A stretch of DNA of 64,000 nt from Pavona decussata (lineage: Eukaryota), in assembly GCA_977016875.1 (NCBI GenBank), contig CDRNST010000119.1:620001-684000 (forward strand), given 5' to 3'. The stretch's first letter is position 1; each line of letters opens with the position of its first letter. Position numbers and translations under genes: made by a program. Under the pieces are notes generated by a model. That model did not search any database. It was not told the DNA's origin and saw only the letters and a program-made list of their open reading frames with translations. Shown here piece after piece: positions 46,881 through 60,505 of the stretch.

Positions 46881-46966
46881 AAAGGAGGATATTACTATCT
46901 GCACGGCATGCACCGCGTAGCAACTATATTATCAAACGGCTGGCCCCAGGTGAATTTCATTTTACA

Positions 46967-48528
46967 ATGGACGCCGTCAAGGTAGTAACGCGGCAGCTCG
47001 AGGTTTTCGAGAAATCGAGTGTTATTTACTTGAATTGCGTGGATTTAGCCGTCGATATCAGGCAGTCTTCGGAAATGCTGCCATTTATAGAGTATAAGAT
47101 GCTTCTCGGGCACGTGAACTTTCCAGATGAGCTTCAAAATCGAAGATAGGTGCTGTTTACGAACACGCCGCAAACAGTGACGCAGTTTGAAAACGTTCGA
47201 TCACCAGCAGTACTCGAAGTTACAGCCAGCTCTATTGTGAAGGTAAAACGAACACTTTGCATATCTTAGTTTATATATTTTATGTTTAAGAAGTGTGTAT
47301 AAATCTCAAGGCAGCTTTAATCTGATAGATGCGGATAGCTGTTCGATTTGGTGAACTCGCCATGTTTTATATTTTCATTATTCTGATTATTAGCTTGATG
47401 GTGTGAGAAAGCGGTTGCTTTGATATATCAGTGGAACATGCTTGATAATCTTTTTCAGTTAAGCTGCCTTTTCAACTCTCTCATTCACCTTTTTAGTAGT
47501 CATTCTCATTTTGGAAAACGATTGAGATTAAAAACCTAATAAAGTTGGATGCAGAGAAAGTGAACATGGAAATAATTGTTTTCCTGGTGCCACCATACAC
47601 AATTCAGTATGGGCTAATTTTTGGACTGCATTGAACCAGTAAATAAATATTGTTCTTAATTATTACAATTTGTTCCAATTTTTGTCATTTTATGTTTAAG
47701 TGTGTATAAATCTTAAAGCAGCTTTAAGGTGATAGGTGCGGATAGCTGTTCAGTTTGTTGAACTCGTCGTGTGTTTTATTTCCATAGCTGGATGGTGAGA
47801 AAGAAGTTGCTTTGATCTATCAGTGAAACATGCTTGATAATCTTTCTGTTACGGCGACGTCAATGCAGCCCGTCAAAGTCTACGACGTGGAAAATAAATT
47901 CAACTTATTGCCTTGGTTGGACATCACAACTGCTGTGTGCAATTGCTCTAGATTTCCAGCGGTTGGATCTGTTGTTGTAAATGCCGATTCAGATGCTTAT
48001 GGATTTGCAGATGCAACTGGAGGACCAGATTACAGTGAAGAAATTCAACTGGATAATGACGATGAAAGTGAACAAGAAAGCGATAAAGATGACGACGAAG
48101 TTGGTGAAATTGACCATTTCGAAGAACAGTGTTATGCTGAAAAAATTAAACTTAAGGGTTGTAGTTTTCATGAGCAATTTCAACTTGCCCTAAAGAAACT
48201 AATTGCTATGCATGAGGACATAGAAATGAAATTGTCCTTTGAATCAGTGAACATGCGAGACGACAATGCCATTGTTGCCCAGGCAAAGTTGGATAACACC
48301 TGGCAGTCACTGGGATATGTCCCTGCACCCAAGTTGCCTAAAGTGACTGTGGCGATACAGAAACATCAAATTCAAAGTGTCAGACTGGTCTGCGTATACA
48401 GGAAATATATTTACAACATTGGCTTTCACCGATATTTCGGTGATACAATTGTTGTCAAAAAAGGACGTTGGGACAGGGATACCAAGTCATATTCCTACAA
48501 TGATTTACCGACTGGCAAGTTTGACTAA
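46967..48528 (+). pseudogene. HIRAN-like domain gene of the P-like element (probably spliced; one in-frame stop in exon 1)
   Basis: Exon 1 from ATG 46967 to a GT at 47243. The 3' exon has an acidic tract, then KLKGCSFH..LSFESVNMRDDNAI..LGYVP. Confidence 0.6.
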
Positions 48529-48802
48529 ACACCAATTCTGAGTTGTTCAAAGGAGGATTAAGCTAACCCAGGATAAGGGTGAATTTTGATCCAGTGAAAT
48601 AACTCTTCAATGAAAAATTTTCCAAAGTTTTTCTGCCCTTCAGATTCGACTTTCATTTATCTTTGAACTTCTAGCTACAATTAAGCTTTTGAAAACATTT
48701 TTCAACAATCGTAGATTAATTGTTAATCCTGGATTAATCAGGATGTGTTGCTGTTTTATTGATTTACTAGTCTTTTTCTTTCTACATGTATACAACCAAA
48801 CA

Positions 48803-57644: not shown

Positions 57645-58170
57645 TTATTCGATGGTTTTACATATAATACGCGCGGATATTTTGCGAGTTGCGTAGTATT
57701 TTTCCGAGCCCCGAAGGGGCGAGGAAAAATACGAGCAATGAGCAAAATGTCCGCGAGTATTATATGTAAAACCATCGAATAAGAGATTTATTATTCCACT
57801 ACAAAAAGATTTTGTTATTTTGGCTTCTCTGTTTTGGTAACAGTTTTCAAATGCACCCGGCATCAACTGTCCATCGGTATATGGCGCGTACGAATGATGT
57901 AAACAACACAGAAAGCCAGTTAAATGTCTTTAATTTGATTAGATAAAATGAAAAGATAAATGACAAGTGAAACTTGTTTTCGAGTCTGCATCGTTTCAAA
58001 AACTATTCTTCGTCCAGTCCGGACATTGTTGCTCCTTTTTTCTGCCTTTTCCGTCCGTATTCGCTCTGTTGTAAACCGGTCAAACCGGGACACTACAGTG
58101 TATTACGGTCTCATATTTTGCGCGTTCTCTTGACCTTATTTGGTGAAATGACATAATAGTGGAATAATAA
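57645..58170. mobile_element. Crypton-like non-autonomous element in an intron
   Basis: Internal inverted repeat TTATTCGATGGTTTTACATATAATAC / GTATTATATGTAAAACCATCGAATAA and TTATTCCACT..AGTGGAATAA. Confidence 0.55.
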
Positions 58171-60505
58171 AATATAATATATACTTTTATAATATAAGTA
58201 CATACAAGACAATGGGACAGCAGTGTTCAACATTCCTAGGTATATTGATTTCACTGAATTATAAGCAGAATTTAGTACTTGGATTTCAGTTCCAGGGAAC
58301 TTTGCTTCTGCAGACCGTTTCCCTCTTTCCCACTCTGTGTTTAGACTTGTCCTGGCAATATTTACTCTTGCCTACAAATGAATTATAACACTGCATAACT
58401 AAATAGAACAATAAACACAGAACAACTAAACAATGTCATTTTCAAGCTTTAAAATAGATTTCTTTTGGATATGGATAACAATTAGCATTCCGACCTGAAA
58501 TTTAACATTCATCAAACTTTAAATGAAACTTGTTGTATACCAACATTCAATGTATGCTAGAAACTGTTTAGAGGCTCAGAAATACAATTTCTACATACAT
58601 TGAATGCTGGATATACAACCAAAAGGCAAAGTAGCCAGCAGTAAACCGCTGGTAGGTAGCTGGTTTCTATTGAAACTACTGATATAATCAATATATATTA
58701 TAAATTATGCAAGAAGATTAATAGTTTCATATTTTATAGAACTATAATTAGCTGCAGGATAATTACCAACACCACCTGGATGGTGAAAAGTGACAGTGAA
58801 AAGTAATTGCAATCATATAAATCTATACACATTTGACTCAATTGCAATCACCTTCATTGGGAATCCAATGTCACCCACATCACATCCTCTCCACATTGGC
58901 CTTGCAAATAAATACTTAAATCGCCCGGGAAATTCAGTGTCCATGGTCTCAAGCCATTTGCGGTAATCATCAGGCTCTTTGATCTATCGAAAAACAAAAT
59001 ATAAACCATCTGAATTGTCACACTAATTTATGATTGTCTTGAATACAAATAGCTTGGTTAATGTACACTGTGATGGAAGTCAATAAGCAAGGTTGGTAAA
59101 CAAAGCAATTCAAATTAATAATACTATCAGTTTGAAGAAATATTCACAAATCATTCATGAACTGACATTATTGGTGAGAGAGCCCAGACCCAATATATTA
59201 ACCCAGACTTGGGCAAGCATGCACCTGAAAAGCAAGATAAAAAGTCAGCCCCTTTACAAGCATCCCTTAATAATTTCACAGTTTACAAAAACTGAGTTCT
59301 TTTGTGGCATATTAGTCAAGAAATTATGGTGCAAGAAAAAAAAGGTAGAGATGTGGTTAACCGGTGAATGTTAGTGCATGCAAAGAATTCAATGTTGTAC
59401 TCAATTAAACCAAATGGCATGCGGTCAAATGGCATCAATGGCTGCTTTGTTCCAGGGCGATCTTTCCCCAAACAGGCACAGAAATTGTAAACCAGATTGG
59501 GCTTTCCTTTGTCTTTAAGGCGCCTCATTGCCTCCAAAGACAGTGGCACAAAGTCTGCTGGATTTGTATCAGTGCGTATTTCAGTGGCTAGATTCATGTA
59601 TATGGCATTCCAAGCAGCAACACGGCTATCCCTGTTTGTTAGCCACAGCAGTTCCAGGGCCAAAGAAAGCAATGCCTCTTTTGTCAGATGCTTCCCACAT
59701 ACTTCCTCAAGAAATGAGGTCCTTGCTTCCTGGGGCTGTTTTGCAAAGATCTTATGAAGAACATCCTTACTCTGCTGAAGAGTGAGATGCTCAATTGCCT
59801 CTGACAAGTCTGGGCAGTGAAGACTTGTGCCTGACGTAACTGCGGGTCGTTCATCTGCGAGATATGCCTCTACAGTGAGCCCCATCGCATCTTCAGCTTC
59901 GTCAACAGTGTCGTACACTTTGGCTAAAGTACATAACACTTGCTGTCTCACAGATAAGCCTGCAATAAATTTATTAACCATTAATTAATAAAATTATTGG
60001 ACTAAAATACTAGGAGCTTGGGAACATGAGTCCCAAGCAATAAATACAGGTCGAATCATGACACAAATCGCGCCAAAAATACCTCACATTCAACTTTAAA
60101 TTTTTTGTTGAAAACGTGGAGTCAATAGGAGTCGATCAGTGCCCAGTGAAACTTTGAAATATAAAAGCTAATATTTGAATATCATAATCCTATGGACTCG
60201 TCGTTTAAGTTCCGAAATAACGCATTCAAAATAGGTCATGCATATTCAATAACAACAGTCATGGTTGACAAGCTACGAACAATACGCAAAGTATTGCTGT
60301 TTTGAAGAATATCTCTCTCTGAAAAATATTCTTTTTTGAATGTTAATGTAATAAAAAAAGATAAATTACTCACCATGGATCATTTGTGATACGAAGAAAT
60401 CCAGCTCAAACTTGGCCTCAAACATGCACATTCCTCTCACTGACCGGAAGCCATTTTACCGAAATTGGCGCAAGGTACGATGGGAAGATAGTAATATCCT
60501 CCTTT

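Follow-up and report, generated by a model that had tools for sequence, protein, structure and literature searches.

A defective transposon of Pavona decussata with a very probable place in a deep branch of the P-element/THAP9 transposase clan

Results and Discussion

The stretch of Pavona decussata DNA analysed here (64,000 nucleotides, positions 620,001 to 684,000 of contig CDRNST010000119.1, assembly GCA_977016875.1; the whole of it is called the window, and positions are counted from its first letter) contains at 46881-60505 an insertion which an earlier note, made from the letters alone, had taken for an intron-rich, two-gene transposon of the P-element kind. We consider it very likely that this insertion belongs to a deep, unannotated branch of the P-element/THAP9 transposase clan, as a defective cut-and-paste transposon whose intact relatives are two-gene elements. 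The divergent P-superfamily lineage proposed in the earlier note is supported by the fold of the transposase, not by its sequence, and copies with the same ends and with target duplications are present elsewhere in the genome.

The transposon, its ends and its copies in the genome

The element measures 13,625 bp from end to end and lies, as had been claimed, inside a BEL/Pao pol gene, which is identified as such because the right flank encodes, on the minus strand, a Pao retrotransposon peptidase (PF05380, E 7e-44). The perfect 20-bp inverted ends and the target duplication were also found as described, with 100% complementarity over 20 nt and with a duplication of 9 bp. The earlier size of 13.6 kb is correct as a span, but it includes a foreign nested element of 3.37 kb, without which the transposon is about 10.25 kb long, near the 9.85 kb of its C218 paralog (see below). 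The ends are made up of the following features:

46872..46880: left copy of the target duplication, ATTGCTCTC, 9 bp
46881..46900, plus strand: left terminal inverted repeat, 20 bp (a 24-bp version in the short derivatives)
60486..60505, minus strand: right terminal inverted repeat, 20 bp
60506..60514: right copy of the target duplication, 9 bp

The 602-Mb assembly was scanned with the 20-mer end sequence, allowing at most one mismatch and using the reversed letters as a control, and this returned 31 forward and 31 reverse matches, compared with 0 for the control. Besides the window copy, there are 29 head-to-head pairs of ends at a spacing of 0.5-0.95 kb (mostly 0.9-0.95 kb, two at 482 bp). 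Among the 20 short copies inspected, 16 are bracketed by their own perfect 9-bp duplication, with sequences that are all different, and the remaining four have duplications with 1-2 base differences; two of the 20 represent one segmental duplicate. The flanks and duplications of the 482-bp copies C436:4178603-4179084 and C436:4221559-4222040, 43 kb apart, are identical, so these two reflect a segmental duplication and not two insertions. The short copies join some 500 bp from the right end (60006-60505) to some 320 bp from the left end (46881-47202), with approximately 94% identity to the window element and a median identity of 93.8% among themselves, and since they are built from both of its ends, they are internal-deletion derivatives of the window element or of its parent.

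A second subfamily is represented by the C218 element (approximately 9.85 kb), which has 33-bp inverted ends beginning CAAGGAGGAT, a 9-bp duplication (GGGCACGAC) and both genes, and whose transposase exon is about 59% identical to that of the window. Two further copies of this subfamily were found, one (C71) with a 9-bp duplication containing one mismatch and one (C270) with 99.4% identity over 7.2 kb. The terminal AAGGAGGAT is common to the window element and the C218 subfamily, and the inverted ends recognised by this transposase family begin with (A/C)AAGGAGGAT. The family makes 9-bp target duplications (staggered target joining) and has mobilised short deletion derivatives in this genome. 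None of the findings that the earlier note had named as refuting its reading was made: the C218 subfamily, too, has inverted ends and 9-bp duplications, and no paper on the family came to light.

Transposase homologs and the fold evidence

When the 180-aa exon at 51513-50974 was used as the query against 1.84 billion representative proteins, 540 transposase relatives were found, 231 of them at E ≤1e-10. The long relatives are "uncharacterized" proteins of 757-1181 aa from Branchiostoma, Glandiceps (a hemichordate) and Amphiura (a brittle star). Homologs from Lineus (a nemertean), Actinostola (an anemone) and Dysidea (a sponge) came from a further search, so the full-length relatives span six animal phyla. 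In an alignment of 18 homologs (A2), the conserved acidic residues D82 (18/18), D305 (16/17) and E627 (16/16) form the predicted DDE triad, and D451 with H454 (both 18/18) make up the D-x-x-H motif; all of them have counterparts in the window exons.

The fold was examined on the amphioxus homolog P0003 (757 aa, 48% identical to the window exon), which stood in for the window protein. Its AlphaFold (AF2) model has a mean predicted local distance difference test score (pLDDT) of 76.9 and a predicted template modelling score of 0.71. Foldseek against the PDB returned only two significant matches, 6p5a and 6pe2 (the Drosophila P element transposase strand-transfer complex), with E 2e-4 and probability 1.0. 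This comparison with Drosophila P transposase, which the earlier note had proposed as a check, was carried further by VIA-align, where P0003 superposes on 6p5a_A with Z 26.8 (root-mean-square deviation 3.5 Å, 339 of 442 residues, model 1-660 on chain 167-565) and on the second P transposase match with Z 26.7, while the next families are Transib (Z 12.3), RAG1 (10.4) and Hermes (10.0). Since the PDB lacks several transposase superfamilies, a shape search of the ESM Atlas was also made: seven of the ten matches listed belong to THAP9/P clusters (PF21787, PF21788, PF21789), with 342-441 aligned residues, and the other three listed have no common Pfam family, none of the ten being a MULE (Mutator-like element), hAT, Kolobok or other transposase family.

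According to the fold match of P0003, the catalytic region contains a helix-turn-helix, a split RNase H domain and a large, mostly helical insertion domain, as in P transposase. The order of elements in the model is beta1 (76-85), a helical bundle (108-241), and then beta2, beta3, alpha1 and beta4, so the bundle is an insertion of approximately 130 aa and four helices between beta1 and beta2 of the RNase H fold. In P the first two catalytic Asp residues are 73 residues apart (D230 and D303; PMC7776569), whereas in the family homolog they are 223 residues apart because of this insertion; the distance from the second Asp to the Glu is 322 in the family and 228 in P.

Further points of likeness to Drosophila P/THAP9 are the predicted D...D...E triad with D-x-x-H and the beta2 motif A-T-H-x-L-V-F-M, with the second Asp in register: hhalign of the family with the canonical P elements of the same genome aligns beta2-beta3-alpha1-beta4 in this way. 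The cut-and-paste mode, the short inverted ends and the short non-autonomous copies are likewise those of the P superfamily. The 9-bp duplication, present in two subfamilies, is that of the P element of D. buzzatii and is within the range of 7, 8 and 9 bp reported for the superfamily (PMC3698922), and it is thus not a feature that sets this family apart. The differences from P, besides the residue distances, are that the family lies below the P Pfam thresholds, that it has an obligatory-looking second gene, that the window subfamily has about 10-11 exons, and that its relatives have a different N-terminal head.

Regarding this head, the earlier note had proposed a long unrecognised N-terminal region in place of THAP. 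No THAP domain was indeed found by Pfam, either in the long homologs or in the N-termini of eight full-length homologs, but the region is not without resemblance in the relatives, and the window copy lacks the exon for it. The eight N-termini have in common a W...E...L...WP...W...R pattern, and four of them match Myb_DNA-bind_4 (best E 5e-5, 22.6 bits, below the cut-off of 27); on the basis of the pattern and of these sub-threshold matches, the head of the intact relatives is most likely a Myb/SANT-like DNA-binding domain, where P has THAP.

The second gene

The plus-strand gene (gene 2) consists of two mapped coding exons:

46967..47146, plus strand: first coding exon of gene 2, with its ATG 86 nt inside the left end
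47830..48528, plus strand: main exon of gene 2, 232 aa, with a predicted HIRAN-like domain at about 48118-48474

The first exon has a counterpart at the same position in the C218 paralog (tblastx E 4e-13, 33% aa identity), although at the DNA level there is no similarity beyond a 16-nt exact match. The gene 2 open reading frame has 53 matches in the genome, and at 15 other loci (25-53% identity) a transposase match is found at a distance of 2-8 kb, the gene 2 match being in every case downstream of it and on the other strand, i.e., in convergent orientation. With a gene 2 profile (A5), the partner was also found, likewise convergent to a neighbouring transposase gene, in two distant animals: in Branchiostoma lanceolatum (L080 17113-17922, minus strand, E 3e-53) and, within a called 270-aa gene, in Dysidea avara, a sponge (L081 13888-14502, minus strand, E 3.5e-20). 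The two-gene structure claimed earlier is therefore conserved at these 15 loci, in amphioxus and in a sponge.

In the AF2 model of gene 2, the N-terminal half is disordered and acidic, while residues 97-215 have pLDDT >90. The top 16 Foldseek matches are all HIRAN domains (lp_0118, HLTF; probability 0.94-1.0, E 2.5e-3 to 0.09), and VIA-align gave Z 10.2 over 102 of 103 residues of 3k2y and Z 8.1-8.3 for HLTF, which is nearly the whole HIRAN domain. The Pfam HIRAN model (PF08797) has no match to the window gene 2 protein and none above cut-off among its paralogs; it matches 6 of 15 paralogs weakly (E ≤1, best 0.0022). With moderate confidence, the model points to a HIRAN-like fold in the C-terminal domain, like that of HLTF and lp_0118 (PDB 4s0n, 4xzg and 3k2y). 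Gene 2 also has an E-P-x-N-x-x-D-x-N-A-(I/L) stretch, which we take to resemble the conserved HIRAN motif. HIRAN domains bind free 3'-OH DNA ends, as known for HLTF, and the titles of PDB entries matched by the gene 2 model include DNA-bound HIRAN structures. Unlike HLTF, the gene 2 protein is small and stand-alone, with an acidic disordered N-terminal half, no helicase or RING, only weak Pfam HIRAN matches, and a transposon as its setting.

An improbable explanation is that gene 2 is a passenger, i.e., a captured host fragment without a role in transposition. Such an origin would agree with the disordered and acidic N-terminal half, and with the lack of detectable kinship to any known transposon protein, three unnamed database fragments being the only database matches of the gene. 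It does not agree with the position and convergent orientation kept at 15 other loci (25-53% identity), in amphioxus and in a sponge, nor with a first exon that is conserved as protein while its DNA has diverged, and co-inheritance from sponge to chordate is not expected of a passenger.

Transposases with an accessory protein, both read inward from the ends, are also found in ProtoRAG/Transib (with a RAG2-like gene) and in PIF/Harbinger (with a Myb-like ORF1), but there the accessory proteins are Kelch/RAG2-like or Myb-like, and here HIRAN-like. In fold, the family is also far closer to P than to Transib and RAG1, and the duplication in the window is 9 bp, not 5 bp as in Transib/RAG or 3 bp as in PIF/Harbinger.

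Evidence against the P-element relationship and other superfamilies

Several results weigh against the assignment as a whole. The curated P models (PF21787, PF21788, PF21789, PF12017) have no match to any window exon, and the long homologs all remain below cut-off; TNP-like_RNaseH_N (PF21787) matches two homologs at E 0.01-0.04, the best with 16.6 bits where the cut-off is 24.6. The hhalign comparison with the canonical P elements of the same genome has a probability of 19% (E 0.0012), and sequence and profile searches of the PDB with the transposase gave no match. The fold support comes from the model of a homolog that is 48% identical and not from the window protein, and the template modelling scores of the Atlas matches are 0.45-0.49 (by query). 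For gene 2, the HIRAN support is moderate (Z 8-10, best Foldseek E 2.5e-3), and a PDB sequence search returned only acidic low-complexity matches. In the RNA check, which used assembled contigs and not raw reads, no joint was found across any proposed intron of either gene, the coverage being almost wholly that of a repeat at 48803-48955 and of three thin contigs (depth 3-5, at the start of gene 2). Lastly, the short copies are about 6% divergent from one another, which means that the activity of the family is not recent.

As to the sequence models, the canonical P elements of this genome reach E 1e-24 with PF21787 and carry three P domains, and none of the divergent family's loci is listed with them; additionally, PF21788 (the GTP-binding insertion domain) is undetected by sequence in the long homologs. 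It could be argued from the low hhalign probability that the element is a member of Kolobok or of another superfamily that makes 9-bp duplications, either Mutator/MULE or Merlin (8-9 bp), and that the likeness to P is an artefact of unsolved structures. Nine bp is the classic Mutator size, and we are aware of no solved structure of a MULE or Kolobok transposase; none is among the matches, and VIA-align is unable to rank these families. The Atlas, however, covers unsolved families, and its listed matches are predominantly THAP9/P. In seven long homologs, at E up to 0.1, Pfam detected neither THAP nor a domain of MULE, hAT or another transposase family, and the match to 6p5a over 339 of 442 residues includes much more than an RNase H core. 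Duplications of 9 bp are also known from P-family elements (PMC3698922). On balance, this reading is improbable.

The candidates were accordingly rejected one by one: Kolobok, as the 9-bp duplications vary in sequence and there is no TTAA target; MULE, which is alike in its 9-bp duplication but has neither a Pfam domain here (E up to 0.1) nor a cluster among the Atlas matches listed; and hAT and Transib/RAG, whose Z values (Hermes 10.0, Transib 12.3, RAG1 10.4) are far under those of P and whose duplications are 8 or 5 bp. A domesticated or ordinary host gene between chance inverted repeats, suggested by the annotation of homologs as ordinary intron-bearing "uncharacterized protein" genes in several genomes, is already refuted by ends that recur at 29 other sites with 9-bp duplications in the inspected copies and by the deletion derivatives, and a chance inverted repeat is rejected by the genome-wide copies, while the insertion also splits BEL/Pao pol and the gene is multi-copy with many copies broken.

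Exon structure and decay of the window copy

The transposase gene of the P-like element was mapped by tblastn of three full-length homologs onto the window, and one small exon (58371-58279) was added by eye. Ten exon segments are colinear with the homologs from 59981 to 49422 on the minus strand:

59362..59981, minus strand: first retained coding segment, aligning from residue 165 of the Lineus homolog P0159, with its donor out of phase
58852..58983, minus strand: exon DDYRKWLETM..., placed by tblastn and splice sites
58279..58371, minus strand: small exon ARVNIARTS..., with canonical in-phase sites, fitting the KARVNVA consensus
57470..57599, minus strand: exon with WIKLDATD and the predicted first catalytic Asp (18/18)
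56683..57026, minus strand: exon coding most of the helical-bundle insertion (helices 108-241 in the homolog model)
56130..56374, minus strand: exon for beta2-beta3-alpha1 of the RNase H fold (ATHVLVTM...), with a frameshift in the A6 run 56343-56348
51940..52086, minus strand: exon with GIVTDGE and the predicted second catalytic Asp (16/17), in register with the canonical P (T/C)DG(E/A)
51017..51737, minus strand: exon with DHNH (D-x-x-H; Asp and His 18/18), KQSNYDAERLLS and IDNWHEASNGR, with an in-frame TGA at 51514-51516
50405..50632, minus strand: exon with TDDLETFFS and the predicted catalytic Glu (16/16 homologs)
49422..49710, minus strand: last exon and stop codon (C-terminal LPFYYW...RLHRL), 49-61% identical to homolog C-termini, acceptor at 49710

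The six motifs quoted in the earlier note (WIKLDATD, IVTDGE, DHNH, KQSxxDAERLLS, IDNWxEASNGR and TDDLETFFS) are all on the minus strand and in the order given there. The proposal of about 11 exons that splice in frame into a protein of about 1000 aa is only partly retained: GT..AG sites are canonical and in phase at eight of the nine junctions and the segments total about 980 codons (hand sum), but the frame is broken by the TGA, the frameshift, an out-of-phase donor and the loss of the first exon. Pfam gave no match on any of the window exon pieces. In the C218 subfamily a single exon covers the stretch that starts at the first Asp and stops shortly before the second, so the many introns are a trait of the window subfamily and not of the whole family.

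Where the window copy has the in-frame TGA, a residue within one unbroken exon is present in the paralog L030 and in all homologs. The +1 frameshift in the A6 run lies in a stretch (exon 56374-56130) that is continuous in the C218 paralog and may be a homopolymer assembly error; a 13-nt GT..AG interval at this run is too short to be accepted as an intron. The sole GT close to where the first segment ends (59361-59360) does not fit the phase of the acceptor at 58984/58983. This segment begins in the last helix of the relatives' Myb/SANT-like domain, and the first coding exon, which in the relatives encodes that domain, was not found in the 520 bp up to the right end of the window copy, while the C218 paralog has an upstream exon for the first two helices of the N-terminal domain (E 3e-13). 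Because the Myb exon is missing and the frame contains one TGA and one frameshift, the window copy is unable to make the full protein, and, judged by these lesions in its sequence, it is dead or dying.

Three further insertions or repeats were found within the element:

52677..56048, minus strand: nested foreign element, 3.37 kb, inside the intron that separates 56130 from 52086, its 33-nt inverted ends being 97% complementary
48803..48955: foldback repeat between the two genes, 153 bp, with 62-nt arms
57636..57791: second foldback, in a transposase intron, with 57-nt arms (88% complementary)

The intron with the nested element is 4,043 nt long. The nested element has an intact open reading frame of 379 aa (53377-54516) with matches to ALOG (PF04852, E 5e-20) and to Phage_integrase (tyrosine recombinase; PF00589, E 4e-11), as well as a run of approximately 55-bp tandem repeats at about 54650-55290, and in type it resembles Crypton or DIRS/Ngaro elements, with no reverse transcriptase. 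The foldback at 48803-48955 is covered, to a depth that sums to thousands, by RNA-library contigs with many unrelated flanks, some of them from coral metatranscriptomes; this repeat is probably a miniature element of high copy number, nested separately, often co-transcribed and outside the transposon proper. The second foldback may be another miniature element.

Proposed mechanism and significance

In the architecture that we propose, the intact relatives carry two genes reading inward from both ends. Gene 1 would encode a transposase of approximately 1000-1150 aa with a Myb/SANT-like head, a split RNase H domain with D...D...E and D-x-x-H, a helical insertion domain and the extra four-helix insertion of about 130 aa, and gene 2 a protein of approximately 250 aa whose C-terminal half would adopt the HIRAN-like fold. 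By analogy with P (PMC7776569), the predicted DDE triad would carry out metal-dependent cleavage and strand transfer, presumably as a multimer on both ends; P transposase leaves 17-nt 3' single-stranded extensions (PMC7776569). The Myb/SANT-like head may hold the end-recognition role that THAP has in P. To speculate further, the HIRAN-like partner could bind free 3'-OH ends and hold or protect the 3' single-stranded tails that excision would leave on the element or at the donor gap, a suggestion made because P leaves such extensions and HIRAN binds 3'-OH ends, and which is conditional on a long, P-like stagger.

The family is distinguished by the failure of the P models, the Myb/SANT-like head in place of THAP, the helical insertion in the predicted RNase H fold and the HIRAN-like partner across animals. 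Regarding the earlier suggestion that it may be undescribed, no publication on the family was found in a search that covered the literature, with Repbase and Dfam outside it; nor did that search turn up a report of HIRAN in a DNA transposon or a description of a new P-like superfamily matching this one. The family may already be filed in Repbase or Dfam as a P-like element. The full proposal, i.e., an undescribed ancient P-like clade, deep enough for a superfamily-level branch and marked by its Myb/SANT head, its additional helical insertion and a HIRAN-like partner dedicated to the 3'-OH single-stranded ends of excision, is a tentative one which we regard as possible but doubtful; if true, this would be the first transposon-encoded DNA-end-binding accessory factor of such a kind.

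P transposase is rather isolated among eukaryotic transposases in both structure and mechanism, with its GTP cofactor and its 17-nt staggered cuts. A family that would combine the P fold with a different DNA-binding head and an always-present HIRAN-like partner, from sponges to chordates, offers a natural comparison as to which features of P are ancestral and how long 3' tails are handled in cut-and-paste transposition. On the practical side, more than 500 "uncharacterized" public proteins can be labelled as transposase-derived, and some gene models that fuse transposase pieces to host domains can be flagged as suspect.

Related loci and gene models

Gene models of the latter type are P0046, P0169 and P0170 of Branchiostoma floridae and B. 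belcheri, which are named "Sushi domain-containing" or "carbohydrate binding" and have a C-terminal transposase piece, fused in P0046 to Sushi and C-type lectin domains. Chimeric annotation where a transposon has inserted is the probable explanation, exon capture being possible as well. At the Dysidea avara locus, a Harbinger-type transposase gene with a weak THAP match (L081 7024-8846) lies 1.2 kb upstream of the sponge copy of the family, which suggests a cluster of transposons.

In the Pavona decussata genome, canonical P/THAP9-like elements coexist with the divergent family (C78:2682435, C86:788020, C251:1510986 and others; L053-L060); their open frames measure 450-690 aa and contain the full set of three P Pfam domains. 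Additionally, positions of about 59-137 of PF21787 match (E 2e-5 to 3e-5) within open frames of 1327 and 2402 aa, at C167:590719-590970, C226:37619-37870 and C88:1118916-1119158; these long frames with the C-terminal half of PF21787 could be fusion proteins or giant P-related genes.

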